DNA from: Thalia democratica
Taxonomy: Eukaryota
Assembly: GCA_965202585.1 (NCBI GenBank)
Contig: OZ241827.1
Coordinates: 12,028,001 to 12,092,000, forward strand
Direction: 5' to 3'
DNA length: 64,000 nucleotides
A program made the translations under genes and the position numbers. Under the pieces are notes generated by a model. That model worked only from the letters and a program-made list of their open reading frames with translations. It made no database searches and was not told the origin of the DNA. Positions 42,744 through 59,412 of this stretch are shown here, piece after piece; positions within the stretch are counted from its first letter, which is position 1; each line of letters opens with the position of its first letter.

Positions 42744-43706
42744 TGTATTTAATGGTACTTATCAGTTTTTTTAGTAAATATTTTTTTAATTATTTGATGT
42801 AAAACTTGTTTTGGTAAAAGGAATATTGGTTTTTGATTTAATCTGTGGAATTAAGTAACTCGGTAAAATAGAGTGGGAGGCCCGCAGAATTGTAAATGAC
42901 CAACCGAGTAGCTTTTTAAAAATTTTAGTTAAATCAAGCCCGCGAAAGATAAAGCTGCACCACCGCTAAATCAATTTTATAGCTTTTACTTTATATTCTA
43001 AAATTTTTGATTGAGATTCAAAATAAGATTTTAGTTAGATTTTACGGATCATTTTAAAATTGCATTATTAGTTCAAAATTTGAAAAACTAATTAAAATTC
43101 ATGTTTCTACGAGACAAAATAAACAATTGAGTAATTTTTTTTTGTTTCATTGTTTTACTTTTTGTCTTATTATAAACAACATTTAAAGAAAAGTTACTCT
43201 TCCAGATTAATTGCTAAGTTATAAAAAAACTAAATATAACAATGTCGGAAAAATACAACGATTTGTCCCAAAACAGTAGTGATGACGTTCTACCATTTCT
43301 ACATAATAATGAGCATATGCTTTCATTGGAAGACCAAGACAAAATTCTTTCAAAAATGTGTGATGACGACTTTATTAGACGCGAAATAGAAAGCATTGGT
43401 TCTTTCGCGCTAACTGCAACAAACAGTTTAATGCAAGATGAGCAAAACAGAATAAATATAAACGAGCAAGAAAGTTGTCAGCCCGCTGTGTTTTCTTCGA
43501 CAAATCAAGCTCCTAGCTACACAGTGCAAAATCAATATGAAAATAATCCAAGTTGTGCAAGAGGTCAGCCTTTGTATCAAAATGTTCAGAATTGCACATT
43601 TCAAGCGCACCAAGGTGGCATGCTTAATTACTCAAACTATCATACATTAACTTCTTCTTCTGACTATAGTCTACAACAAAATTGTCAATCAAATACGAAC
43701 AGCTGT
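42744..43706. repeat. 963-bp inverted duplication arm (other arm 52465-53427)
   Basis: Near-identical reverse complement covering the promoter and 5' part of exon 1 of the double-homeobox gene. Confidence 0.95.
43242..43706 (+). pseudogene. Truncated duplicate of exon 1 of the double-homeobox gene
   Basis: MSEKYNDLSQ...QSNTNSC, then it breaks into the tandem array; no homeobox exons follow. Confidence 0.88.
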
Positions 43707-46700
43707 ATTCTATATTCAAAATTGATTTTAAATATTTCATTGAAAAAAAAAGTTAAAAAAGTATAGGATTTATGAAAAAATTGTGAGAAAAAAATAAGTT
43801 ACTGATCAGAAAATGAAAGGACAAAAAAGTGGGCGCTGGACAGCCTGCCTGTTTTATTTCGGCTGCCTGTCCTGCGTACCAAGTTCACGTCCCAGTGGAA
43901 TTACAATCTCCTTCTGAAAAAACGACCTAACAAGGTTTACAATCTAATGCACATCGCGCTAACAGGAGTGCTAGCAGCTAATCGCATTTTTATATACTTG
44001 CGTGGTCGTCCCCATAAAAGAGCAACCACCGGGACTCGAACTCGGGACGCAGGGCCGGCAGTCGCATAAGCAAACCGCTGGGCCATACAGGCGCCCGCCT
44101 GTCTACTCTAATTACTGTATATAAACCATCTATATTCAAAATTGATTTTAAATATTTCATTGAAAAAAAAAGTTAATAAAGTATAGGATTTATTAAAAAT
44201 TGTGAGAAAAAAATAAGTTACTGATCATAAATTGAAAGGACAAAAAAGTGGGCGCTGGACAGCCTGCCTGTTTGTTTTCGGCTGCCTGTCCTGCGTACCA
44301 AGTTCACGTCCCAGTGGAATTACAATTTCCTTCTGAAAAAACGACCTAACAAGGTTTACAATCTAATGCACATCGCGCTAACAGGAGTGCTAGCAGCTAA
44401 TCGCATTTTTATATACTTGCGTGGTCGTCCCCATAAAAGAGCAACCACCGGGACTCGAACTCGGGACGCAGGGCCGGCAGTCGCATAAGCAAACCGCTGG
44501 GCCATACAGGCGCCCGCCTGTCTACTCTAATTACTGTATATAAACCATCTATATTCAAAATTGATTTTAAATATTTCATTGAAAAAAAAAGTTAAAAAAG
44601 TATAGGATTTATTAAAAATTGTGAGAAAAAAATAAGTTACTGATCAGAAATTGAAAGGACAAAAAAGTGGGCGCTGGACAGCCTGCCTGTTTGATTTCGG
44701 CTGCCTGTCCTGCGTACCAAGTTCACGTCCCAGTGGAATTACAATCTCCTTCTGAAAAAACGACCTAACAAGGTTTACAATCTAATGCACATCGCGCTAA
44801 CAAGAGTGCTAGCAGCTAATCGCATTTTTATATACTTGCGTGGTCGTCCCCATAAAAGAGCAACCACCGGGACTCGAAATCGGGACGCAGGGCCGGCAGT
44901 CGCATAAGCAAACCGCTGGGCCATACAGGCGCCCGCCTGTCTACTCTAATTACTGTATATAAACCATCTATATTCAAAATTGTTTTTTAATATTTCATTG
45001 AAAAAAAAAAGTTAAAAAAGTATAGGATTTGTGAAAAAATTGTGAGAAAAAAAGAAGTTACTGATCAGAAATTGAAAGGACAAAAAAGTGGGCGCTGGAC
45101 AGCCTGCCTGTTTGATTTCGGCTGCCTGTCCTGCGTACCAAGTTCAAGTCCCAGTGGAATTACAATCTCCTTCTGAAAAAACGACCTTACAAGGTTTACA
45201 ATCTAATGCACATCGCGCTAACAAGAGTGCTAGCAGCTAATCGCATTTTTATATACTTGCGTGGTCGTCCCCATAAAAGAGCAACCACCGGGACTCGAAC
45301 TCGGGACGCAGGGCCGGCAGTCGCATAAGCAAACCGCTGGGCCATACAGGCGCCCGCCTGTCTAGATCCCAGTGCGTCACATTACAATCTCCTTCTGAAA
45401 AAACGACCTAACAAGGTTTACAATCTAATGCACATCGCGCTAACAAGAGTGCTAGCAGCTAATCGCATTTTTATATACTTGCGTGGTCGTCCCCATCTAA
45501 GAGCAACCACCGGGACTCGAACTCGGGACGCAGGGCCGGCAGTCGCATAAGCAAACCGCTGGGCCATACAGGCGCCCGCCTGTATACTCTAATTACTGTA
45601 TATAAACCATCTATATTCAAAATTGTTTTTTAATATTTCATTGAAAAAAAAAAGTTAAAAAAGTATAGGATTTATGAAAAAATTGTGAGAAAAAAAGAAG
45701 TTACTGATCAGAAATTGAAAGGACAAAAAAGTGGGCGCTGGACAGCCTGCCTGTTTGATTTCGGCTGCCTGTCCTGCGTACCAAGTTCACGTCCCAGTGG
45801 AATTACAATCTCCTTCTGAAAAAACGACCTAACAAGGTTTACAATCTAATGCACATCGCGCTAACAGGAGTGCTAGCAGCTAATCGCATTTTTATATACT
45901 TGCGTGGTCGTCCCCATAAAAGAGCAACCACCGGGACTCGAACTCGGGACGCAGGGCCGGCAGTCGCATAAGCAAACCGCTGGGCCATACAGGCGCCCGC
46001 CTGTCTACTCTAATTACTGTATATAAACCATCTATATTCTAAATTGATTTTAAATATTTCATTGAAAAAAAAAGTTAAAAAAGTATAGGATTTATAAAAA
46101 ATTGTGAGAAAAAAATAAGTTACTGATCAGAAATTGAAAGGACAAAAAAGTGGGCGCTGGACAGCCTGCCTGTTTGATTTCAGCTGCCTGTCCTGCGTAC
46201 CAAGTTCACGTCCCAGTGGAACTACAATCTCCTTCTGAAAAAACGACCTAACAAGGTTTACAATCTAATGCACATCGCGCTAACAAGAGTGCTAGCAGCT
46301 AATCGCATTTTTATATACTTGCGTGGTCGTCCCCATAAAAGAGCAGCCACCGGGACTCGAACTCGGGACGCAGGGCCGGCAGTCGCATAAGCAAACCGCT
46401 GGGCCATACAGGCGCCCGCCTGTCTACTCTAATTACTGTATATAAACCATCTATATTTAAAATTGATTTTAAATATTTCATTGAAAAAAAAAGTTAAAAA
46501 AGTATAGGATTTATTAAAAATTGTGAGAAAAAAATAAGTTACTGATCAGAAATTGAAAGGACAAAAAAGTGGGCGCTGGACAGCCTGCCTGTTTGATTTC
46601 GGCTGCCTGTCCTGCGTACCAAGTTCACGTCCGAGTAGAATTACAATCTCCTTCTGAAAAAACGACCTAACAAGGTTTACAATCTAATGCACATCGCGCT

Positions 46701-49116
46701 AACAGGAGTGCTAGCAGCTAATCGCATTTTTATATACTTGCGTGGTCGTCCCCATAAAAGAGCAACCACCGGGACTCGAACTCGGGACGCAGGGCCGGCA
46801 GTCGCATAAGCAAACCGCTGGGCCATACAGGCGCCCGCCTGTCTACTCTAATTACTGTATATAAACCATCTATATTCAAAATTGATTTTAAATATTTCAT
46901 TGAAAAAAAAAGTTAAAAAAGTATAGGATTTATTAAAAATTGTGAGAAAAAAATAAGTTACTGATCAGAAATTGAAAGGACAAAAAAGTGGGCGCTAGAC
47001 AGCCTGCCTGTTTGTTTCGGCTGCCTGTCCTGCGTACCAAGTTCACGTCCCAGTTGAATTACAATCTCCTTCTGAAAAAACGACCTTTAAGGTTTACAAT
47101 CTTATGCACATCGCGCTAACAAGAGTGCTAGCAGCTAATCGCATTTTTATATACTTGCGTGGTCGTCCCCATAAAAGAGCAACCACCGGGACTTGAACTC
47201 GGGACGCAGGGCTGGCAGTCGCATAAGCAAACCGCTGGGCCATACAGGCGCCCGCCTGTCTACTCTAATTACTGTATATAAACCATCTATATTCAAAATT
47301 GTTTTTTAATATTTCATTGAAAAAAAAAAGTTAAAAAAGTATAGGATTTGTGAAAAAATTGTGAGAAAAAAAGAAGTTACTGATCAGAAATTGAAAGGAC
47401 AAAAAAGTGGGCGCTGGACAGCCTGCCTGTTTGATTTCGGCTGCCTATCCTGCGTACCAAGTTCACGTCCCAGTGGAATTACAATCTCCTTCTGAAAAAA
47501 CGACCTTACAAGGTTTACAATCTAATGCACATCGCGCTAACAAGAGTGCTAGCAGCTAATCGCATTTTTATATACTTGCGTGGTCGTCCCCATAAAAGAG
47601 CAACCACCGGGACTCGAGCTCGAGACGCAGGGCCGGCAGTCGCATAAGCAAACCGCTGGGCCATACAGGCGCCCGCCTGTCTACTCTAATTACTGTATAT
47701 AAACCATCTATATTCAAAATTGATTTTAAATATTTCATTGAAAAAAAAAAAGTTAAAAAAGTATAGGATTTATAAAAAAATTGTGAGAAAAAAATAAGTT
47801 ACTGATCAGAAATTGAAAGGACAAAAAAGTGGGCGCTGGACAGCCTGCCTGTTTGATTTCGGCTGCCTGTCCTGCGTACCAAGTTCACGTCCCAGTGGAA
47901 TTACAATCTCCTTCTGAAAAAACGACCTAACAAGGTTTACAATCTAATGCACATCGCGCTAACAGGAGTGCTAGCAGCTAATCGCATTTTTATATACTTG
48001 CGTGGTCGTCCCCATAGAAGAGCAACCACCGGGACTCGAACTCGGGACGCAGGGCCGGCAGTCGCATAAGCAAACCGCTGGGCCATACAGGCGCCCGCCT
48101 GTCTACTCTAATTACTGTATATAAACCATCTATATTCAAAATTGATTTTAAATATTTCATTGAAAAAAAAAAAGTTAAAAAAGTATAGGATTTATGAAAA
48201 AATTGTGAGAAAAAAATAAGTTACTGATCAGAAATTGAAAGGACAAAAAAGTGGGCGCTGGACAGCCTGCCTGTTTGATTTCGGCTGCCTGTCCTGCGTA
48301 CCAAGTTCACGTCCCAGTGGAATTACAATCTCCTTCTGAAAAAACGACCTAACAAGGTTTACAATCTAATGCACATCGCGCTAACAGGAGTGCTAGCAGC
48401 TAATCGCATTTTTATATACTTGCGTGGTCGTCCCCATAGAAGAGCAACCACCGGGACTCGAACTTGGGACGCAGGGCCGGCAGTCGCATAAGCAAACCGC
48501 TGGGCCATACAGGCGCCCGCCTGTCTACTCTAATTACTGTATATAAACCATCTATATTCAAAATTGTTTTTTAATATTTCATTGAAAAAAAAAAGTTAAA
48601 AATGTATAGGATTTATGAAAAAATTGTGAGAAAAAAAGAAGTTACTGATCAGAAATTGAAAGGACAAAAAAGTGGGCGCTGGACAGCCTGCCTGTTTGAT
48701 TTCGGCTGCCTGTCCTGCTTACCAAGTTCACGTCCCAGTGGAATTACAATCTCCTTCTGAAAAAACGACCTAACAAGGTTTACAATCTAATGCACATCGC
48801 GCTAACAAGAGTGCTAGCAGCTAATCGCATTTTTATATACTTGCGTGGTCGTCCCCATAAAAGAGCAACCACCGGGACTCGAACTCGGGACGCAGGGCCG
48901 GCAGTCGCATAAGCAAACCGCTGGGCCATATAGGCGCCCGCCTGTCTACTCTAATTACTGTATATAAACCATCTATATTCAAAATTGATTTTAAATATTT
49001 CATTGAAAAAAAAAGTTAAAAAATTGTGAGAAAAAAAGAAGTTACTGATCAGAAATTGAAAGGACAAAAAAGTGGGCGCTGGACAGCCTGCCTGTTTGAT
49101 TTCGGCTGCCTGTCCT
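43707..49116 (-). repeat. Tandem array of ~420-bp units (13 tRNA-like heads, one 0.22-kb partial unit at ~45363-45585)
   Basis: Marker GGGACTCGA at about 44031, 44450, 44869, 45290, 45512, 45933, 46352, 46771, 47189, 47610, 48031, 48453 and 48874; few differences between units. Confidence 0.97.
44022..44102 (-). ncRNA. tRNA-derived (SINE2-like) Pol III head, first unit shown, repeated in every unit
   Basis: A box TGGCCCAGCGG (44085-44075), B box/T arm CCGAGTTCGAGTCCCGG, Gly-like loop CTGCCGG, upstream TTTATATA, downstream T4 and T6 runs. The acceptor stem does not pair. Confidence 0.65.
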
Positions 49117-50019
49117 ATTTTACATGTTACTGAAAAATTATAAGTTTCCGTAACAAAAAATGCTCGTTTTTGCCCAGCTGAAATAGATTTCAAATAAAAC
49201 TTTAATTGTGACGTGATAGTAGGTAAAAGTTTAAAAGTAGCATTTTTTCTGGAAACCTTTTTTGAATGATTTATTATCAAGTTTTACATTCTGTTATACT
49301 GGTATTTTAAAAATGTTAAAGTTCAAAACATTTTATTTACCTTAAAAATAAATTATTTCAGCTGTGCTTTTTATTTACTCTGTTCCAAACAAAATATTAG
49401 AATTATTGATAATGCTCGTAAAAATTATGTTCTCAATTGTTTTAGTTAACTGACCTGCATTTTTTGCAAAAACCTCGTCCGGGAATTTTTGTAATATTTT
49501 AGCTGTTTTAGAAGTTAATTTAATTTGATCTTTAAAAAAACATTATAGTAGTTGCAGAATAGTAAAAGTATAAAACAGTTTTTAATAATATGTAATGTTT
49601 AACTACAAATTAGATAAAGTAGTATATTTAAACCAAATAAGTCTTACTGTAGTTTATACAGCAAGTAAAGTTTAAAACAAAAAAAAAAGACTACTTGTAA
49701 AACATCAAACGCGCATTGTTTTAATTAACTATTTGCATTTGGAACGGTTTTAATTTCCGACATGGTAGTTTTATTCCAATAAATAACAGCACTGAAATTT
49801 TAATAGTTTATTACTACAAATAAAAATACAATGACCTTAAAGATTTAATAGAATTCATAACAGTTTATTATAAAATTTATATATGACAAGCTTTTCGTAT
49901 CTGAAAGACATCTAAAAATAATTTTAGTTTTTAACAACATTCTAACTTGTTTACTATTGAACTAAAAGTCTAATATAAAAAAAAACTTGGCAAAATCTAA
50001 AATATATTAGAACTTTCGT

Positions 50020-50696: not shown

Positions 50697-52929
50697 TCAT
50701 GCAAGTTCATTTCTTTTAATTTCTTTTCTTTTCTTTTCCTCTTGTCGTTTGTTATTGAACCAACACTGTAAAAAGAAATGTTAGTTAGTCATTTATGTAA
50801 AAACATCAAACTAATTCTTTGAAAGAAGAAGAAAAAATACAACTTCATTATTATATTAAAAGACTAAAGAGGGTTATTATTATTCTTTAAATTAATTGAA
50901 GTATGAATACATAAAATACACTTAAATCTTCCAAGTGTCCTAAAAGCAACTTCTCTCTATCTAAAAACAACATAACAAATAAAAAAAATTTAATCAAATT
51001 CTTTTATATAAAAACAAACTATTTACTCTGCATTTATTTTCAGGCAGGCCAATTTTTTCGACAAGTTGAAAAAACTCTTTTTTGTTTGGTCTTCTATTTT
51101 CCCTGTTAGTTTTTTCGTACAGTTCTTCGAAACATTTCAACTGATGTGAAGTATAGCTGGTGCGGGGTCTAAGTTTTGAAACGTTTTTCATTATAAGTAA
51201 TAGCACTTTTGTTTCAATATATGTTTAAACATACAAACTTAATCTTCATTGTGTGTTGAAAACTAGCTTTGATTGTCAAAAAAACATTTTTTACGTGTTT
51301 TTATAACTTTGAAATTTTTTAATGAAACTCTTACCTTTTCTTATTTTTTTTCGTTTTCTGGTCTATGACACAGGACTCCCTTTCTAAAATACATTATTAG
51401 GTAATTTTTTTTATATGTTATTTATCAAACTTACTTAAATACAAAATTAATATTTTTTTTTAAATCTAGGTAGAAAATATGTTTCAGAAACACTATTGTT
51501 TTTTTGGTCATATTTTTTCAACTTATTTGTTTCAAATACTAGGATAACAAACAAACAAACTATTATTTTCAATGAGTTTAATTTCTTTTGAATAAGTTGC
51601 AAGAAGGTGTTTAAATATTTCCTCATGATTACCTCCCTTAATCTTCTCAACTGCAATACCTTGACTTTTATCTTTATGTATTCTATTTTGAAACCAGGAC
51701 TAAAAAACTTTAAAAATATTAGAGCTTTATAAATTAATTTATTAATTTTTAGTAAAAAAAAGTAAACTTTTATTATTTCTTTTATTACATGAACTTGATA
51801 AAAAAACAAACTTACTGTTAGTTCTCTTTTACTAAGACCAGTTAATTTTCCAAGTTTGTCCCTTTGATCTGGCAGTGGGTGTTTAATTCTTTCATAAAAA
51901 TATTCTAACATTGATGATTGAGAGAATGTTAAGTGTATCCTTTGTCTGTATGTAAAATCATACTTAAACTTTCCGAATTTTCACACATTACATTATTTAA
52001 GTTAATTTTGAAAATTCAAATAAAATAAATTTGTAAACTAGTTAAATTTTCTACTAGTTTAAAGTTTTGAATTTACTAACTTTCGTTTTTTTAGTTTAGA
52101 TTCCTGCTGTTTACATTGTTCGTTGGAATTATCAAATTCAAGTTTTAAATTATTATTTAAAATCAATGCATCGGATGAAGGTTCTGAAACTTTTTGCTGC
52201 AAACACCACTTTCCAAGTTTGGCATCTATGGATGATAAATAATAATTGACTGCTAAGAAAAAAAAAATTTTCAGTTAAAAAATTTAATTAAAGTTTACCT
52301 TTCATAGAGGGGTATGCACGTGGCAGTTGAGCAAAACTATCTGCTTGAGCAGGATTAACCGTTGTTACATTGAAATTATTTGCACAAGAAGGTTTCAGCT
52401 GGATACCATCTTGCAAACAAGTACTCAACTGCTGGTAGTTGTCAAAACATCTGTTTGACTGGTAACAGCTGTTCGTATTTGATTGACAATTTTGTTGTAG
52501 ACTATAGTCAGAAGAAGAAGTTAATGTATGATAGTTTGAGTAATTAGGTATGCCACCTTGTTGCGCTTGAAATGTACAATTCTGAACGTTTTGATACAAA
52601 GGCTGAGCACTTGCAAAACTTGGATAACTTTCATATTGATTTTGCACTGTGTAGCTAGGAGCTTGATTTGTCGAAGAAAACACAGCGGGCTGACAACTTT
52701 CTTGCTCGTTTATATTTATTCTGTTTTGCTCATCTTGCATTAAACTGTTTGTTGCAGCTAGCGCGAAAGAACCAATGCTTTCTATTTCGCGTCTAATAAA
52801 GTCGTCATCACACATTTTTGAAAGAATTTTGTCTTGGTCTTCCAATGAAAGCATATGTTCATCATTATGTAGAAATGGTAGAACGTCATCACTACTGTTT
52901 TGGGACAAATCGTTGTATTTTTCCGACAT
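50697..52929 (-). CDS. Double-homeodomain transcription factor, 7 exons, 443 aa (410 aa with the alternative exon-4 donor)
   Basis: Exons 52929-52299, 52252-52081, 51945-51816, 51699-51561 (or -51660), 51383-51335, 51168-51027 and 50765-50697 are all in frame. HD1 RKQRIHLTFSQSSMLEYFYERIKHPLPDQRDKLGKLTGLSKRELT|SWFQNRI; HD2 KKRPRTSYTSHQLKCFEELYEKTNRENRRPNKKEFFQLVEKIGLPENKCR|CWFNNKRQ. Confidence 0.88.
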
Positions 52930-53194
52930 TGTTATATTTAGTTTTTTTATAACTTAGCAATTAATCTGGAAGAGTAACATTACTTTAAATGTTGTTTATA
53001 ATAAGACAAAAAGTAAAACAATGAAACAAAAAAAAATTACTCAATTGTTTATTTTGTCTCGTAGAAATATGAATTTTAATTAGTTTTTCAAATTTTGAAC
53101 TAATAATGCAATTTTAAAATGATCCGTAAAATCTAACTAAAATCTTATTTTGAATCTCAATCAAAAATTTTAGAATATAAAGTAAAAGCTATAA

Positions 53195-53305
53195 AATTGA
53201 TTTAGCGGTGGTGCAGCTTTATCTTTCGCGGGCTTGATTTAACTAAAATTTTTAAAAAGCTACTCGGTTGGTCATTTACAATTCTGCGGGCCTCCCACTC
53301 TATTT
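53195..53305. mobile_element. Probable hAT MITE end fragment in the double-homeobox promoter (mirrored at ~42870-42970)
   Basis: TAGCGGTGGTGCAGC terminus-like sequence with GCGGGC motifs; no TSD identified. Confidence 0.35.
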
Positions 53306-53629
53306 TACCTAGTTACTTAATTCCACAGATTAAATCAAAAACCAATATTCCTTTTACCAAAACAAGTTTTACATCAAATAATTAAAAAAATATTTACTAA
53401 AAAAACTGATAAGTACCATTAAATACAGAGTCAATAGTTATTACAGCTTATTGATAAATACAAAAATTGATAACAATATTTAATTATAGTAATCATTATT
53501 TATAAAAACGTTTTTCCAGCTTAGACTGTTTTTAGATATAATTTCAAGAAATAATTAGATTAGCAAATCACTATTCTTAGATAAAAGCAACAAACTAAAA
53601 AAATTCGCAAAAAAAAAACTGAAAAACCT

Positions 53630-54520: not shown

Positions 54521-55873
54521 ATGTCGAAACATCATAATAAGAATAAGGATAATTATAAACCGTTATCTTTACAACAAATCACCACGCGCTCCAATAAAAA
54601 GAAAATGAACACCAGGGCAGATACAGCAGCTCACAGTGGAGACCACACAGCGTCCAATAATAACCCGGAATCTTCGAAACATACGGTTACAAAAAAAATA
54701 ACAGAAGAAAATCGCGCAAAGTCTACCTTTAATCCAAATGCTCCCGATTTAGATAACGTTATACGCGAGGGGGAAAATTCTTTTCCGTCAATTAACCCCC
54801 AAGAAAGTCAGGGAAATATTAATTTAGCTTCTCAAAACCGCGGCCTAGACGATCTTACGCATGCACGAGAAATGTACAACCAAAAGCTAGCAGCGGTCCA
54901 AAAATTAGAAGAGCAGGAAGAACTAGTTAAATTGCGAAACGAAATTAGTAAGTTAGATATTAGATTAGGCTATAATAAGGTAGAACAAATACCAGAGCCT
55001 TACGAGCGCGAAATTCCACTAAAACGCGACCCTTTTTTTGAAAATTACGAAAATCAAAGTTATATAAATAATAATTTTAACGATACATTCAGAGCACAAA
55101 GATTAAGTAAAAAGTTTAAGAGATTAGACGTTGTAAAAAATCCTCGAGATACTATTAACTACTTTGAAGAAGAACTACATGGTGAAGGTATTGTAAACGA
55201 TTTAGAAAAATACAATTATTTAATAGGGTTTTGGCCAAGAGTCGACATTTCTGATTACTATAAGATGTCTGAAAGAAATAAAAGAAATTATAGTTCACTA
55301 AAAAACTTTTGTTCAAACCGCGACAACGAATTAACTGAAATTTTAGATAAAATTCCTATCTGGGAAACTAAAACAACTTTTAATCAAATCTTTTCCACCG
55401 CCACGAAATGGGCGAAGTGCCCGGAAGAAGACAGAATAAAGTTTTTTCTAGCGTATTTAATGCCATCCTCAATAAAAAGTAAAATTAAAGAGTATTACGA
55501 TGCGGAACTGGACGTCTTTAGACGTAAAAGTCAAGCTATATGGAACGCTCATAAGGAAAGCGCATTACAGTCAAATCAAGTGAATTACAATAGATATCAC
55601 AGACCTGATCATTATACCAAAAAAAATAATTATCAAAGAAGGATGCGTTCTAACCCTCAACAAGAGTCTTATCCTAGAAATAATAATACAAACAACAACC
55701 TTGGTCATCAACAACAAAATAGAAACAACTACAACTCGAACCAATCTTTTCAAAGATACCGAGATAATGAAAGAAGAGAATACAATTATTCAAATTCATA
55801 TTCACGTCCTTATGCTCATACAAACAATCAAAATCGACAACAGGGAAACGATTCCCCGTCGTCCCGACAATAA
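54521..55873 (+). CDS. gag: Gag polyprotein (450 aa, N/Q/R-rich C-terminus, no CCHC knuckle)
   Basis: Long ORF directly upstream of pol; coiled-coil-like and basic segments. Confidence 0.8.
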   Translation: MSKHHNKNKDNYKPLSLQQITTRSNKKKMNTRADTAAHSGDHTASNNNPESSKHTVTKKITEENRAKSTFNPNAPDLDNVIREGENSFPSINPQESQGNINLASQNRGLDDLTHAREMYNQKLAAVQKLEEQEELVKLRNEISKLDIRLGYNKVEQIPEPYEREIPLKRDPFFENYENQSYINNNFNDTFRAQRLSKKFKRLDVVKNPRDTINYFEEELHGEGIVNDLEKYNYLIGFWPRVDISDYYKMSERNKRNYSSLKNFCSNRDNELTEILDKIPIWETKTTFNQIFSTATKWAKCPEEDRIKFFLAYLMPSSIKSKIKEYYDAELDVFRRKSQAIWNAHKESALQSNQVNYNRYHRPDHYTKKNNYQRRMRSNPQQESYPRNNNTNNNLGHQQQNRNNYNSNQSFQRYRDNERREYNYSNSYSRPYAHTNNQNRQQGNDSPSSRQ

Positions 55874-55909
55874 GAGGAAGAGACGATGGGTGCAGAAATA
55901 AGCCTCTTA
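55843..55909 (+). other. -1 programmed ribosomal frameshift signal (G GGA AAC plus H-type pseudoknot)
   Basis: Heptamer 55843-55849 in the gag frame. Stem 1 CCCGTCGTC (55855-63) / GACGATGGG (55882-90); stem 2 TAAGAGG (55871-77) / CCTCTTA (55903-09). The pol frame is -1 and open from 55771. Confidence 0.82.
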
Positions 55910-55995
55910 ATAGATATCTTAGTAACGTTGTTAAAAGAGTTAATATATCCCATCGTACAAACCATAACCAACTTACAAATAATAAAACCAACGAT

Positions 55996-58900
55996 ATGCG
56001 AAATCCTAAATTAAATTATTTTAAAAATTCCAATAACAAACCTGAATTAACTCTAAATAGTCCAAAAAATTCTCTCTCAAATACTAAACTAATAGCTAAC
56101 AATAACCTTAATACTAATAGTTCAAAATGTAATAATATCTGGAACTTCAAAATTAAAAAGGCTTCACCTGTTAATTTTTATAAACTACCACAAAACTTAC
56201 TATTCACCATAGATAATAATTCTAATGTTTTATTTTTGGTAAATACCGGATGTGAGATTTCCATCCTTCCCAAAAATCTTACAAATGGCATTAATCACTA
56301 TTTTAAACCACAAAGTAAAACAATTAAAGGAATAGGTAACACTCCTATACATCCTATAGGGAGTGTTGATGTTATATTAGAGTTTGGTAATTTAAAAGCT
56401 GTTAAACATAATTTTTGGGTCACACAAGAATATAGGGATTATGGAATAATTGGGTTAGATTTCTTAAAAACTCATAAACTCTCTATTTCTTTAGAAGAAC
56501 TGAGGTTGTATCAATACAAAACCAAACGTGTAGTCAAATTATATACAGCTGACGAATTGCCTAAATCGGTAGTAGTTTCTTCGCACAATCTAGAAATAGT
56601 TAATAGTGAAATTACTTCAGACTTTCAAAATAAATGTAGGGATCTACTTAATGAATTTCCAGAGCTTACAGAAACACCTGATTATACTCGACCGGTAAAA
56701 CACGGGCATTCTTTAGAAATCATAGTTGAAAATTTTAATCCTAAATTAGTTAAAGCGCGTAGATGTAATGGTATAAGACGCAAAATGGTTGAACAAACGT
56801 TCGATGATCTTATAAATAGGGGAGCAATGTCACGTGGTACGTCAGACATGTGTGCTTCACCCATTACTATTGTTCCAAAAAAAGACAATAGTATTAGGGT
56901 ATGTATAGATTATACAGTTCTTAATGCACACACACGCCCAATGTCTTACCCCTTGCCTAGGATTGATGAACTTGCAGAAATTATACCTGAAGGAACACAG
57001 TATTTTTCTTGTCTAGACCTTAAAGAAGCTTACTACTCATTACCTATAAAACCCAGCTCTCAAAAATATGCCGCAATCATTGCTCACCACGGGGTATTCA
57101 TACCCCAACGCACGTCATTCGGGCTGAAAAATGCCCCTATGGCGTTTCAGTCCATGATGCAAAGCATATTAGCGGGTTGTTATGAATTTACGTTTGTTTA
57201 TCTAGATGATATTCTAATTTTTAGTAAATCCAAAATGGACCATTTAAATCACCTCAGAAAAATTTTTCAAACTTTACACAAAAATGGGTTATACCTTAAT
57301 ATGAAGAAATGCGTTTTTGCTCAACATAGACTTGACTTCCTCGGTCACTCGGTAGGGATTGACGGGGTTGATGTTTTACAAACCAAAATAAAAGCAATTA
57401 GGGAACTTCCCAAACCTACGAACCGCAAAGAGCTAAAACGATTTCTTGGGTTATGTAACTATTATCATAGGCACATCCCAAAGCTAGCCGAAACAACTGC
57501 TCCACTTAACGAAATATCAGGGGGCCCTAAATCTACAAATAGGAGACCTTTACATCTAAACGAAACTCAAATTAAATCCTACAACGACACGTTGGCTACC
57601 TTATCAAAAGCAGCGACTCTCGCTTTTGAAGACCATGAAAAACCATTAATTGTTTATTCAGATGCATCCGACAGTCATGTCGGAGCAGTGCTGGAACAAG
57701 AGGGTAAGAATGGTGAAAAACGTCCCCTCGCATTTTTTTCTAAAAAACTGCCAGCCTTGAAAGCTGTCAAATCGACATTTTTTAAAGAATTGCGTGCATT
57801 ATACTTAAGTTTAAAACATTTTCAAAGTCGTATTATAGGACGACAACTGTTTGTTAAGACTGACAGTCTGTCCGTGGCAAAAGCTATTAATAATCCTATT
57901 GGGAACCAATCTCCAATAGAACAGCGCTACATTGCCGCAATAAAAGAATTTAATCCAACAGTTATGCATATTACAGGAGATGAAAATAAAGTAGCCGATA
58001 CATTAAGTCGACCACCTTTAGTAACAGCTATGTACGTTAAAACGTCACATGATGATTCGGATTACATTTATACATCTGAAGAAGATACCGAAGATAGTTT
58101 GTCTGACTATCAGTCATCTGAAAGCGAAGAAGAAGTTATTACTTCAGAATCTTTAAACAAGGAAGAAATAGCTAAGCTACAAAGTAAAGAGCCTGATTTG
58201 ATAAAAACAGCATATGAGCATAAAAAAACAGTCAAATATTTAAAACCAGAAAATCTGGCAGTAATAGTTGAAAATGAACAGCAAAGAATCATCCTACCTT
58301 TTGCTTTAAGATTATCTGCTTACGAAATAGCACATGGTTATTTACATCTAGGGAAAGAGAAATCAGTGTTAGCAACTGCAAAAGACTATTGGTGGCCAAC
58401 TTTACGAAAAGATGTAGAGTACTGGGTTCAGTCATGCTATACCTGTCAAGCCACGAGAACAACTAGGCATAACCGCCCAAAAATTGGGCTATACCCCGCC
58501 AATATCGAGCGTTTTCAATTCGTACACCTAGACCTCGTAGGTCCGATTGAAAAGAAATCGGAAAATTATAACTATATTCTTACAATGAGAGACAGATCAA
58601 CTGGCTTTCTAGCCACTGTTCCGATTGTGGATAAGAAAGCAGAAACAGTCAGAGAAGCTTTTATACAAAACTGGTGTGGTCACTATGGCATTCCACAAGT
58701 CATAATGACTGATAATGGACGTGAATTTTCAAACTCGATTCTAACTCGCACTTTCGAGGAACTTGGTATTGATCATAGATTTTCACCTCCTTACAGTCCT
58801 CAAACTAATGGATTCATCGAGAGGGTACATAATCCAATAAATGTAGCACTTCGAGCACTTCCTGACAAAACAAACTGGCCCCTACATTTGCCATTGATTA

Positions 58901-59412
58901 CTATAAGCATAAACAACTCTTTCATGGAAGGTTCACCTTTTACACCATCACAATATGCGTTGGGAACGTGTGTGAATGTCAGTGGTCGTGTGATGTTAAA
59001 CGAAGTAAGCGATATCGCATCGGAAAATGATGTTTTTGAATCTAGAATTTTTCTACATACAATGTCAAAAGTTAAGAAAGTACAAAAAAATTACAAACAG
59101 AAATCCGTTTATTATGAACCGGGACTGTTTAACAGCGAACAGGTTTGGTTAAAACGGAAAAGTAGAAAAAAGCTCAGTTCTTTATACCAAGGGCCTTACC
59201 CCGTGCATTCATTTAGCGAACACTCGGCGATTATTGATAAAAATTCAAAACTTTTGAAAGTAAGCATAAGAAACATTAAAGCTTATATTCCCAGGGAAAA
59301 CCTTAACGAAAAAGGTGAAATAGTAGGGAAAAGCATGGCATATAACTTAAGGGAACGCAAAAACAAAATTAATTATGCAGAAAGTTCGTCCGATGACGAA
59401 ACTAATGTCTAG
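55996..59412 (+). CDS. pol: Pol polyprotein (protease, RT, RNase H, integrase); probably translated as Gag-Pol from ~55849
   Basis: PR FLVNTGCEIS; RT RVCIDY...LDLKEAYY...YLDD; RH SDASD...TDS...ADTLSR; IN H-x3-H...CxxC, LDLVGP, TDNGREF, NGFIERVH. Confidence 0.97.
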   Translation: MRNPKLNYFKNSNNKPELTLNSPKNSLSNTKLIANNNLNTNSSKCNNIWNFKIKKASPVNFYKLPQNLLFTIDNNSNVLFLVNTGCEISILPKNLTNGINHYFKPQSKTIKGIGNTPIHPIGSVDVILEFGNLKAVKHNFWVTQEYRDYGIIGLDFLKTHKLSISLEELRLYQYKTKRVVKLYTADELPKSVVVSSHNLEIVNSEITSDFQNKCRDLLNEFPELTETPDYTRPVKHGHSLEIIVENFNPKLVKARRCNGIRRKMVEQTFDDLINRGAMSRGTSDMCASPITIVPKKDNSIRVCIDYTVLNAHTRPMSYPLPRIDELAEIIPEGTQYFSCLDLKEAYYSLPIKPSSQKYAAIIAHHGVFIPQRTSFGLKNAPMAFQSMMQSILAGCYEFTFVYLDDILIFSKSKMDHLNHLRKIFQTLHKNGLYLNMKKCVFAQHRLDFLGHSVGIDGVDVLQTKIKAIRELPKPTNRKELKRFLGLCNYYHRHIPKLAETTAPLNEISGGPKSTNRRPLHLNETQIKSYNDTLATLSKAATLAFEDHEKPLIVYSDASDSHVGAVLEQEGKNGEKRPLAFFSKKLPALKAVKSTFFKELRALYLSLKHFQSRIIGRQLFVKTDSLSVAKAINNPIGNQSPIEQRYIAAIKEFNPTVMHITGDENKVADTLSRPPLVTAMYVKTSHDDSDYIYTSEEDTEDSLSDYQSSESEEEVITSESLNKEEIAKLQSKEPDLIKTAYEHKKTVKYLKPENLAVIVENEQQRIILPFALRLSAYEIAHGYLHLGKEKSVLATAKDYWWPTLRKDVEYWVQSCYTCQATRTTRHNRPKIGLYPANIERFQFVHLDLVGPIEKKSENYNYILTMRDRSTGFLATVPIVDKKAETVREAFIQNWCGHYGIPQVIMTDNGREFSNSILTRTFEELGIDHRFSPPYSPQTNGFIERVHNPINVALRALPDKTNWPLHLPLITISINNSFMEGSPFTPSQYALGTCVNVSGRVMLNEVSDIASENDVFESRIFLHTMSKVKKVQKNYKQKSVYYEPGLFNSEQVWLKRKSRKKLSSLYQGPYPVHSFSEHSAIIDKNSKLLKVSIRNIKAYIPRENLNEKGEIVGKSMAYNLRERKNKINYAESSSDDETNV

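Follow-up and report, generated by a model that had tools for sequence, protein, structure and literature searches.

A low-copy family of tRNA-gene-like tandem repeats in Thalia democratica, with a strand-specific T>C excess

The tandem array at 43709–49116 of the window, a 64,000-nucleotide stretch of Thalia democratica contig OZ241827.1, probably belongs to a family of tandem repeats that is young and low in copy number, and whose 419-bp unit would derive from a tRNA gene copied as DNA. Here, we show the anatomy of the unit, its relationship to tRNA genes, the distribution of its family across the genome, the lack of constraint on its sequence, and the local rearrangement at which the array is found.

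As assembled, the array comprises ~12.9 head-to-tail units of 419 bp on the minus strand that are 96–98% alike, confirming the homogeneous array of tRNA-like units that had been predicted. Tandem Repeats Finder returned a period of 419 with 3.9 and 8.9 copies and 96–98% matches over 43709–49116; BLAST with one unit recovered 11 full units, one half unit (45381–45590), and partial units at the ends. The half unit has lost approximately half of the unit length, and at its junction (45365–45380, unstranded) 16 unrelated bases separate unit position 5 from position 210 of the next unit. The reference unit is 44110–44528, such that unit position p equals 44529 minus the window coordinate; it and all of the following features lie on the minus strand. 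A TATA-like element TTTATATAC (44536–44544), formed by the end of the preceding unit, is located 24–34 nt upstream of the tRNA-like start. Arm A (44440–44511) is a 72-nt tRNA-gene-like module with a decayed cloverleaf, an A box TGGCCCAGCGG (44494–44504), and a B box AGTTCGAGTCC (44451–44461). An anticodon-loop-like CTGCCGG is present in the unit; by reading of the sequence, the acceptor of the module is poorly paired (4/7 pairs) and most of the anticodon stem does not pair. Directly 3′ of the module is a T4 run (44435–44438), which differs between arrays and is not conserved, followed by a short hairpin, GCTAGCA/TGTTAGC (44377–44394), and a first conserved T6 run (44336–44341; unit positions 188–193).

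The downstream part of the unit includes arm B (44250–44323), a diverged copy of the tRNA-like module in inverted orientation, which contains the GGACAG...CTGTCC hairpin and aligns to the module with a local score of 30 (shuffles: 8.2 ± 1.4). The presence of this inverted, decayed copy inside each unit is a new observation. A second conserved T6 run (44242–44247) lies immediately 3′ of arm B, and an AT-rich spacer (44110–44241), the unit's most variable portion, makes up the remainder. The fold of the whole unit has a z score of −5.8. Within the array, the TATA-like element and A box are kept in 12 of 12 recognizable heads, as is the first T6 run; the B box and the T4 run directly after the head are each kept in 9 of 12, and the second T6 run is present in 11 of 12, being absent from the half unit. 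Every element that the original prediction had listed (TATA-like element, A and B boxes, Gly-like anticodon loop, unpaired acceptor, both hairpins, and T4/T6 runs) was found in the units.

Alignments indicate that the resemblance of the head to tRNA is greater than expected by chance. Against the tRNA-Gly-GCC and tRNA-Glu genes of the same genome, 43–46 of ~72 positions aligned (z = 6.6–12 vs. shuffles), an identity of 60–64%, and the ancestor may have been of either Gly or Glu type; the head did not align in this way with Ser, Lys, or Val tRNA genes of the same genome. Arm A matches the Gly-GCC and Glu genes of the genome in the length of each segment. The TATA-like element occupies −34 to −24, the same position as in every one of the 11 real tRNA genes that were inspected with enough flanking sequence (genes of this genome located by pattern search). 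The succession of TATA-like element, A box, B box, and T-run has the layout of a complete Pol III type-2 gene with tRNA-gene spacing, which, with the alignments, supports the tRNA-like character first ascribed to the units. Though alignment to the organism's own tRNA genes recovers this relationship, dedicated searches do not call a tRNA: ARAGORN found 0 tRNA genes in the array, and the Rfam tRNA model RF00005 had no match at E ≤ 1 in the array and none at E ≤ 10 in a single unit. A functional tRNA gene was rejected on these negative searches and on the lost cloverleaf, despite the tRNA-gene layout. The best Rfam match of the unit, mascRNA (E = 1.1), is at chance level. A ribozyme-bearing tandem repeat of the retrozyme or newt satellite 2 type was also rejected, as none of the Rfam ribozyme families (hammerhead, HDV-like, twister, and others) matched either strand at E ≤ 10. 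Across the whole genome, Rfam tRNA matches were dominated by a 16-kb periodic repeat on C6.

The family comprises ~150 units at roughly 35–45 loci, which are distributed over almost every large chromosome and contain 1.2 to >15 units each; these counts derive from the assembly, in which collapsed arrays may make them too low. BLAST with the unit returned at least 167 matches, on C1, C2, C4–C10, and unplaced contigs. With up to three mismatches, a 31-mer from the head and a 35-mer from the body matched the genome 150 and 136 times, respectively. The family occupies roughly 60 kb of 802 Mb, in interstitial positions on chromosome arms, and its largest cluster (~17 kb) is on C9. This distribution rules out the single rDNA-like locus that had been proposed; the array is instead one of a low-copy family found on most chromosomes. 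Classical satellite DNA forms long arrays, takes up a sizeable share of the genome, and is usually heterochromatic, a description that the low copy number, interstitial positions, and small genome share of this family do not fit. Diversity inside the array is 0.023, and arrays on C9, C1, and C715 are 97–98% identical to it. Because its own units are no closer to one another than arrays on other chromosomes are to it, homogeneity reflects youth and spread, and not only local concerted evolution. Arrays are entered and exited at random phase, and their flanks are mostly unrelated. Outside arrays, only two kinds of short internal fragment were observed (unit positions 36–151 and 57–124), within other repeats on C6 and C1. 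JGI metagenome contigs contained no exact match to a conserved 29-mer of the unit.

Locally, the array is found ~1.6 kb from the 3′ end of a double-homeobox gene, a distance that had been given correctly, and at the breakpoint of a local inverted duplication. The left flank (42744–43706, plus strand) is a 963-bp inverted duplicate (98.2%) of 52465–53427 (minus strand), which is inside and upstream of the intact double-homeobox gene and corresponds to its 5′ region and the start of its first exon. The duplicate ends 2 nt from the array, which is situated at the inner edge of the duplication. The right flank (49129–49464, plus strand) begins 12 nt from the array and is a 336-bp dispersed repeat with >1000 candidate copies; in five paralogous loci, at least 850 bp lie before this repeat, all missing beside the array. 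None of these five homeobox loci has an array at the corresponding place, which rules out a link to the homeobox gene family. An adjoining inverted duplication is present at only 3 of 22 arrays, one of the three at a contig end. The setting had also been likened to DUX4 and D4Z4. In D4Z4, the DUX4 gene is contained in every 3.3-kb unit. Both systems place a tandem repeat near a double-homeobox gene; however, the analogy fails because the tunicate gene is outside the array of non-coding 419-bp units, paralogous gene copies are arrayless, and the array is located at a rearrangement junction.

Substitutions in the family are strongly asymmetric: parsimony events include 225 T>C versus 22 A>G, as compared with 118 C>T and 107 G>A, and the asymmetry is evident at the column level (Fisher p = 7e-12). 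The excess is confined to unit positions 31–185, just upstream of the first conserved T6 run, and this hot zone matches the predicted +1-to-T6 transcript; the corresponding counts within arrays in the zone are 84 versus 3. Control repeats are symmetric, with no such strand bias. Neighbor preferences of the T>C changes are ADAR-like, the changes postdate a segmental duplication, and the C-sets of different copies are independent of one another. Retention of ancestral C was rejected, as C-sets overlap like independent draws and not like nested sets. G·T repair or A:C mismatch editing in a hairpin is not supported, given equal rates at G·U-paired, A–U-paired, and unpaired T in the hot zone. The erosion appears to be ongoing and affects the promoter boxes themselves. 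This strong one-strand excess is new here, and the pattern hints at transcription of the copies. One tentative account, itself rather less probable than its negation, is that germ-line transcription from the tRNA-type promoter is followed by ADAR-type deamination of adenines on the complementary strand, leaving a heritable T>C footprint over unit positions 31–185. The substrate could be template DNA within an RNA:DNA hybrid or, alternatively, antisense RNA later copied back to DNA. Were this so, adenosine deamination at a Pol III unit would have been recorded naturally in the germ line, and the record would indirectly prove transcription of a "dead" tRNA-derived satellite. The excess offers a testable lead toward transcription-linked mutation or RNA-mediated repeat copying. 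Cyclic contigs of 448 and 449 nt (419 + 30) containing the unit were identified in two marine RNA runs, at low depth and in environmental libraries that may contain DNA; the unit was absent from a second run of the sequenced organism's own sample (X21).

The original prediction read the array as a Pol III noncoding RNA locus or a TFIIIC insulator array. Multiple gene copies encoding a functional Pol III RNA, a tRNA-like or hairpin transcript of ~85–270 nt comparable to primate snaR or Xenopus OAX, would account for the complete promoter and T-run, for the first 35 nt of the head being nearly invariant over 150 copies, and for the coincidence of the T>C hot zone with the predicted transcript; additionally, arms A and B could pair as a long hairpin ending exactly at the conserved T6 run. 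However, selection for Pol III RNA or TFIIIC binding is not visible in the family, because 8 of 20 arrays across the genome have GCCCGA or GCTCGA as their B box, the first T4 run is usually absent across the 20 arrays, the B-box/T-arm region has above-average substitutions, and covariation in the unit structure is nil (term +1.97; 2/90 pairs compensated). Promoter boxes do not have lower rates per site, and stronger conservation of these boxes across copies was looked for and not seen. With neither covariation, cloverleaf, nor Rfam family, the sequences give no sign of a conserved functional RNA; moreover, array ends at random phase resemble insertions of junk DNA, and T>C erosion destroys the boxes such an RNA would need. 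A functional RNA family is, on this evidence, unlikely. It would be most surprising if the array were instead a set of TFIIIC-binding (ETC-like) sites forming a chromatin boundary beside the homeobox gene. The consensus-like B box in 9 of the 12 units, and the position of the array between the gene and an inverted gene fragment, are suggestive of such a role, but the five paralogous gene loci do without an array, other arrays have unrelated neighbors, and the family as a whole does not conserve the B box.

Other rivals concern how the repeat arose and spread. It is quite improbable that a tRNA-derived SINE retroposed first and was amplified in tandem later, as in the squamate SINE-derived satellites. 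A tRNA-related head with A and B boxes would be expected under such an origin, and the fragments within C6 and C1 repeats sit there as captured cDNA might. Against this, the near-equal counts of heads and bodies rule out a dispersed SINE with this head; no monomeric dispersed copies with tails were seen genome-wide, and the many monomers, LINE-derived 3′ region, and A-rich or simple-repeat tail of a tRNA-derived SINE are missing. The upstream TATA-like element, which an RNA copy would lose, is kept at tRNA-gene distance. Target-site duplications and tails were not seen at the array ends that were viewed. A very doubtful alternative is that the repeat is a tandem segment, internal or terminal, of some larger Foldback-, Helitron-, or MITE-like mobile element that carries the arrays. 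Inverted arms within each unit are in keeping with this, as are the C9 arrays, which lie head to head only 6 bp apart, and the three young arrays that abut inverted duplications. However, all-against-all BLAST of the flanks of 22 arrays revealed no common terminal sequence and no shared carrier element, and the inverted duplications beside arrays are copies of local, unrelated DNA.

The origin we consider probable, a tRNA gene copied as DNA, would proceed as follows. A tRNA-Gly(GCC)- or tRNA-Glu-type gene would have been copied along with the TATA-like element upstream of it and the T-run downstream; the unit also contains the inverted, decayed second module copy and the AT-rich spacer. The tRNA-like part has lost its tRNA fold, and its sequence drifts, with no selection visible on base pairing, the B box, or the first terminator. 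Blocks of 1.2 to >15 units, beginning and ending at any phase, have spread to ~35–45 places; some of these are sites of rearrangement, and the window's array replaces sequence kept by the paralogous loci. Movement of the blocks may go through DNA, by extrachromosomal circles or repair-associated copying, or through RNA. Where the TATA-like element, A box, and B box are intact, young units may still recruit Pol III, and the T>C changes at unit positions 31–185 could have been left by adenosine deamination that is linked to transcription and acts on the complementary strand. The family appears to have been caught young: its copies are few, its parent tRNA genes can still be recognized in this genome, and its insertion sites have empty paralogous counterparts for comparison. 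How a satellite is born and spreads should therefore be directly traceable here.

Among known systems, primate snaR arrays are similar in consisting of tandem Pol III-type units from a mobile or tRNA-like ancestor. However, for snaR, abundant transcripts and their binding to a protein partner have been demonstrated (PMC3045588), whereas the tunicate units are known from DNA sequence and constraint is absent. The squamate SINE-derived satellites, with units of 67–215 nt, are pieces of the abundant parent SINEs Squam1–3, occur at many short loci, and are viewed as early stages of satellite formation (PMC10702118). The tunicate family shares with them a low to moderate copy number, many short loci, and a stretch of tRNA-related head that includes box B, but has no parent SINE, its unit resembling a tRNA gene with flanks. 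The closest known kind, by layout and not by shared descent, is the tRNA-derived tandem repeats of amphibians: newt PolIII/TAN (~360-nt unit, derived from tRNA-Glu and reported to be transcribable in vitro), Rana/polIII (~250-nt unit, up to 10% of the genome), and Hy/polIII (~200-nt unit), with Xenopus OAX/satellite I in the same group; no matching dispersed SINE is known for these families (PMC10702118), and none was found in this genome. As in PolIII/TAN-type repeats, the array consists of head-to-tail units within ~200–750 bp, each with a tRNA-related segment carrying Pol III promoter boxes. The tunicate family, in a different phylum by our comparison and with far fewer copies (~150 units), differs by its upstream TATA-like element and inverted second module copy, and would extend tRNA-derived tandem repeats, described so far from amphibians, to a pelagic tunicate.

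Tandem Repeats Finder resolved a head-to-tail repeat with a period of 419 bp over window positions 43709–45364 and 45381–49116 (96–98% matches). A BLAST search with one unit against the window recovered 11 full units and a half unit (45381–45590); the array ends in a 401-bp unit on the low-coordinate side and a 164-bp unit fragment on the other. G+C content is 40–44% in the array, as compared with ~25% in the AT-rich window. Read on the minus strand, each unit begins with a TATA-like element (TTTATATAC), followed after 24 nt by a 72-nt tRNA-like module, or head, with an A box (TGGCCCAGCGG) and a B box (AGTTCGAGTCC); next come a T4 run, a short hairpin, a T6 run, a GC-rich segment with a second hairpin, a second T6 run, and finally an AT-rich spacer of 130 nt. 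All 12 recognizable heads in the array retain the TATA-like element and the A box, and 9/12 retain the B box and, likewise, the T4 run; the first T6 run is intact in 12/12 cases and the second in 11/12, the half unit lacking it. The original prediction thus describes the TATA-like element, boxes, T-runs, and hairpins accurately.

ARAGORN called no tRNA gene in the array, and no Rfam family matched it at E ≤ 1; a single unit searched at E ≤ 10 returned chance-level matches only, the best being to the tRNA-like mascRNA model (E 1.1) over the T-arm. The head is therefore not a tRNA gene, and the tRNA-finder and Infernal-type check proposed for the unit gave a negative answer. The claimed tRNA likeness itself held against real tRNA genes of the same genome, collected by pattern search: the head matches tRNA-Gly-GCC and tRNA-Glu genes at 43–46 of ~72 positions (z 6.6–12 against shuffles); Ser, Lys, and Val tRNA genes score z < 2. 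Segment lengths between the A box, anticodon loop, B box, and 3′ end equal those of real tRNA genes. In each of the 11 real tRNA genes for which enough flank was available, a TATA-like element lies ~24–34 nt upstream and a T-run immediately follows the 3′ end; the unit has both in equivalent places. The upstream element would be missing from an RNA copy of a tRNA; most probably, therefore, the unit arose from a tRNA gene copied as DNA, flanks included.

At tRNA gene loci L063, L064, L066, L073–L076, L033, and L034 (contigs C1, C2, C6, and C7), the TATA-like element lies ~24–34 nt upstream and a T4–T6 run falls 0–5 nt from the 3′ end. The presence of both features in every inspected tRNA gene with enough flank suggests that TATA-assisted Pol III promoters are the rule in the T. 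democratica genome. A tRNA-Gly-GCC pseudogene (L067, C2:16650100–16650330) within a large tRNA cluster has a 3′ half identical to functional copies and a replaced 5′ half; ARAGORN calls no tRNA there. Additionally, outside the window, the Rfam tRNA model matches partial tRNA-like sequence (model positions 8–63, 38.6 bits) at least 60 times over C6:22746503–24124559, spaced regularly at ~16.03 kb and split into two oppositely oriented blocks. A 16-kb macro-repeat, possibly mitochondrial-DNA-like, could account for them.

The whole unit is predicted to fold with unusual stability (z −5.8), the head pairing with unit positions 206–279. Aligned with the reverse complement of that segment, the head scores 30, as compared with 8.2 ± 1.4 for shuffles. 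Given this pairing and alignment score, each unit consists of a tRNA-like module, ~120 nt of further sequence, an inverted and decayed copy of the module, and the spacer; the hairpins noticed originally partly reflect this inverted copy.

Across the 802-Mb genome, which comprises about ten chromosome-size contigs, at least 167 unit matches occur, on C1, C2, C4–C10, and unplaced contigs. With up to three mismatches, a 31-mer from the head occurs 150 times and a conserved 35-mer from the body (the rest of the unit) 136 times, and these counts therefore rule out a separate dispersed SINE carrying the head. Among 20 loci fetched for comparison, arrays range from 1.2 to >15 units and start or stop at many unit positions; flanks are mostly unrelated, except for two segmental duplicates and a few other shared repeats. 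Array consensus sequences are 75–98% alike. The window array is 97–98% identical to arrays on C9, C1, and the unplaced C715, and its internal diversity is 0.023. Because between-array identity equals that among the window's own units, the homogeneity reflects recent spread of a young subfamily, beyond local homogenization alone. Of the proposal of a concertedly evolving single locus, the homogeneous array stands and the single locus does not, the family being present on most large contigs. Other repeats, on C6 and C1, also contain pieces of the unit. One of these repeats, at least 1.6 kb long (L068–L072, C6:7.29–9.44 Mb; at least five copies tens of kb apart, 95–99% identical), holds a 116-bp piece (positions 36–151); a 68-bp piece (57–124) stands alone at C1:25539868. 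At C9:43536118–43543149 (L014), two opposite arrays meet head to head across a 6-bp gap at unit positions 162 and 157, a palindromic junction just beyond the short hairpin (135–152).

The left flank of the window array (42744–43706) is a 98.2% inverted copy of 52465–53427, the 5′ region and first-exon start of the neighboring double-homeobox gene. A plus-strand open frame of 174 aa (43242–43766) is a truncated inverted copy of that first exon (52288–52929, minus strand) and runs into the array; this 557-bp segment has ~36 near-full-length copies in the genome, clustered on C2 (11.3–12.1 Mb), C4 (15.8–17.0 Mb), C7, and C10. On the right, a 336-bp MITE- or SINE-like dispersed repeat (49129–49464; >1000 candidate copies, 86–96% identity) starts 12 nt beyond the array. 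Five paralogous loci share this repeat and the sequence beyond it with the window; before it, these loci have no array but a stretch of at least 850 bp, homologous among them and missing from the window. The array thus occupies a rearrangement junction peculiar to the window's gene copy, as the inverted flank and these array-free paralogs show. An inverted duplicate of DNA 0.6–1.4 kb upstream also adjoins two further young arrays, one on C9 and one at the contig end of C715; none was found for the other 19 arrays within the flanks examined. The suggested analogy with DUX4 and D4Z4 fails: the homeobox gene lies inside the units of D4Z4 and outside them here, and since the paralogous loci also lack the repeat, the likeness is coincidental. 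Farther along the window, 54521–59412 (plus strand) contains two long open frames; because the second (1138 aa) has protease, reverse transcriptase, RNase H, and integrase domains, the segment is an apparently intact Ty3/gypsy-type LTR retrotransposon.

To assess selection, single units drawn from 20 arrays, one per array, were aligned. In 8/20 arrays, GCCCGA or GCTCGA replaces the B box core GTTCGA; the T4 run after the head is confined to the young subfamily, and both T6 runs are largely retained. With T>C set aside, the A-box and B-box regions are not depleted in substitutions (B-box region 1.92 per site, mean 1.31), the RNAalifold covariation term is positive (penalizing), and only 2/90 pairs show compensatory change. 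Because of this box variation, these rates, and the absent covariation, the 20-array alignment gives no sign that either a functional RNA or a TFIIIC site has been conserved. The original prediction, namely one Pol III RNA locus under concerted evolution, or a TFIIIC insulator array, beside a DUX-like gene, is thus only partly supported, the underlying observation being confirmed and neither function finding support. Young units may be competent for transcription. Sequence words from the unit occur in runs of 12 studies, mostly marine metagenomes, in keeping with a planktonic animal that is abundant, and two of the runs come from RNA libraries. When an 828-base query (flank plus one unit) was compared with four runs, the unit reached a high summed depth in the organism's own run; another run from the same organism's sample, of a kind not on record, yielded no unit contig. 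An oligo-dT RNA library gave a 449-nt contig (depth 5.7) and a metatranscriptome a 448-nt contig (depth 24.6), both at low depth, giving neither strand nor ends and open to DNA carry-over. These lengths equal one unit plus 30 bases, the form of a tandem or circular template in a 31-mer graph; if real, the putative transcription crosses unit boundaries.

Units compared in the tRNA-sense orientation show a marked one-strand bias. A C variant occurs at 71/147 consensus T positions versus a G variant at 8/97 A positions (Fisher p = 7e-12); C>T and G>A show no such bias at column level. Parsimony reconstruction on a 73-unit tree yields 225 T>C versus 22 A>G changes, and 118 C>T versus 107 G>A; T>C outnumbers A>G by 166 to 18 on the terminal branches, for which the direction of change is most secure. 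The excess is limited to unit positions 31–185, which extend from the A box and stop just short of the first conserved T6 run (within arrays, 84 versus 3 there and 40 versus 16 elsewhere), and is uneven among copies (heterogeneity p = 3e-15), one terminal branch carrying 10 T>C and no other change. C-bearing positions of heavily changed copies overlap like independent draws and not as nested sets; the changes are therefore derived, and retention of ancestral bases is ruled out. Two loci that are segmental duplicates of each other differ symmetrically in their flanks; inside the unit they show five derived T>C changes, all within 31–185, and no A>G. This difference indicates that at least some changes arose in place after insertion. 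Symmetry was likewise seen in a control repeat and in the flanking DNA of one duplicated pair.

Seen from the complementary strand, the mutated adenines have a 5′ neighbor order of U > A > C > G and a 3′ order of G > C > A > U; the 3′ G effect holds inside positions 31–185 (p = 0.0005) and the 5′ G depletion outside them (p = 0.05). This is the neighbor order reported for ADAR enzymes. The adenosine-deaminase domain PF02137 (ADAR/ADAT1-type) is found at two genomic loci, C7:19657995–19663369 and C7:15488599–15497429, the latter with stop codons inside the matched pieces. In DNA/RNA hybrids, ADARs can deaminate deoxyadenosine and keep their usual sequence preferences (PMC5389660). One of three readings is that the template DNA strand is deaminated in R-loops of a sense Pol III transcript, which would account for where the changes lie, the strand they affect, and their origin in place. 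Alternatively, an antisense RNA may have been edited and later copied into DNA, or antisense transcription may have produced an ordinary transcription-linked asymmetry, for which the effect size would be unusual. Within the zone, positions predicted to be G·U-paired, A-U-paired, or unpaired change at equal rates, and hairpin-mismatch repair is therefore unsupported. What merits further study is this one-strand pattern across a putative Pol III transcript.

As repeat biology goes, the main result is an ordinary one: a family of tandem repeats derived from a tRNA gene. A published account (PMC10702118) describes amphibian tRNA-related tandem families, namely newt PolIII/TAN (~360 nt, tRNA-Glu-derived, transcribable in vitro), Xenopus OAX/satellite I, Rana/polIII (~250 nt), and Hy/polIII (~200 nt), for which it gives no known matching SINE, as well as SINE-derived satellites in squamates. 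The T. democratica family shares the layout of the amphibian families and is filed, by layout only, as a putative tunicate member of the PolIII/TAN type. Its particulars are a very low copy number, an inverted second module in each unit, and a retained upstream TATA-like element, which points to a DNA-level origin from a tRNA gene.
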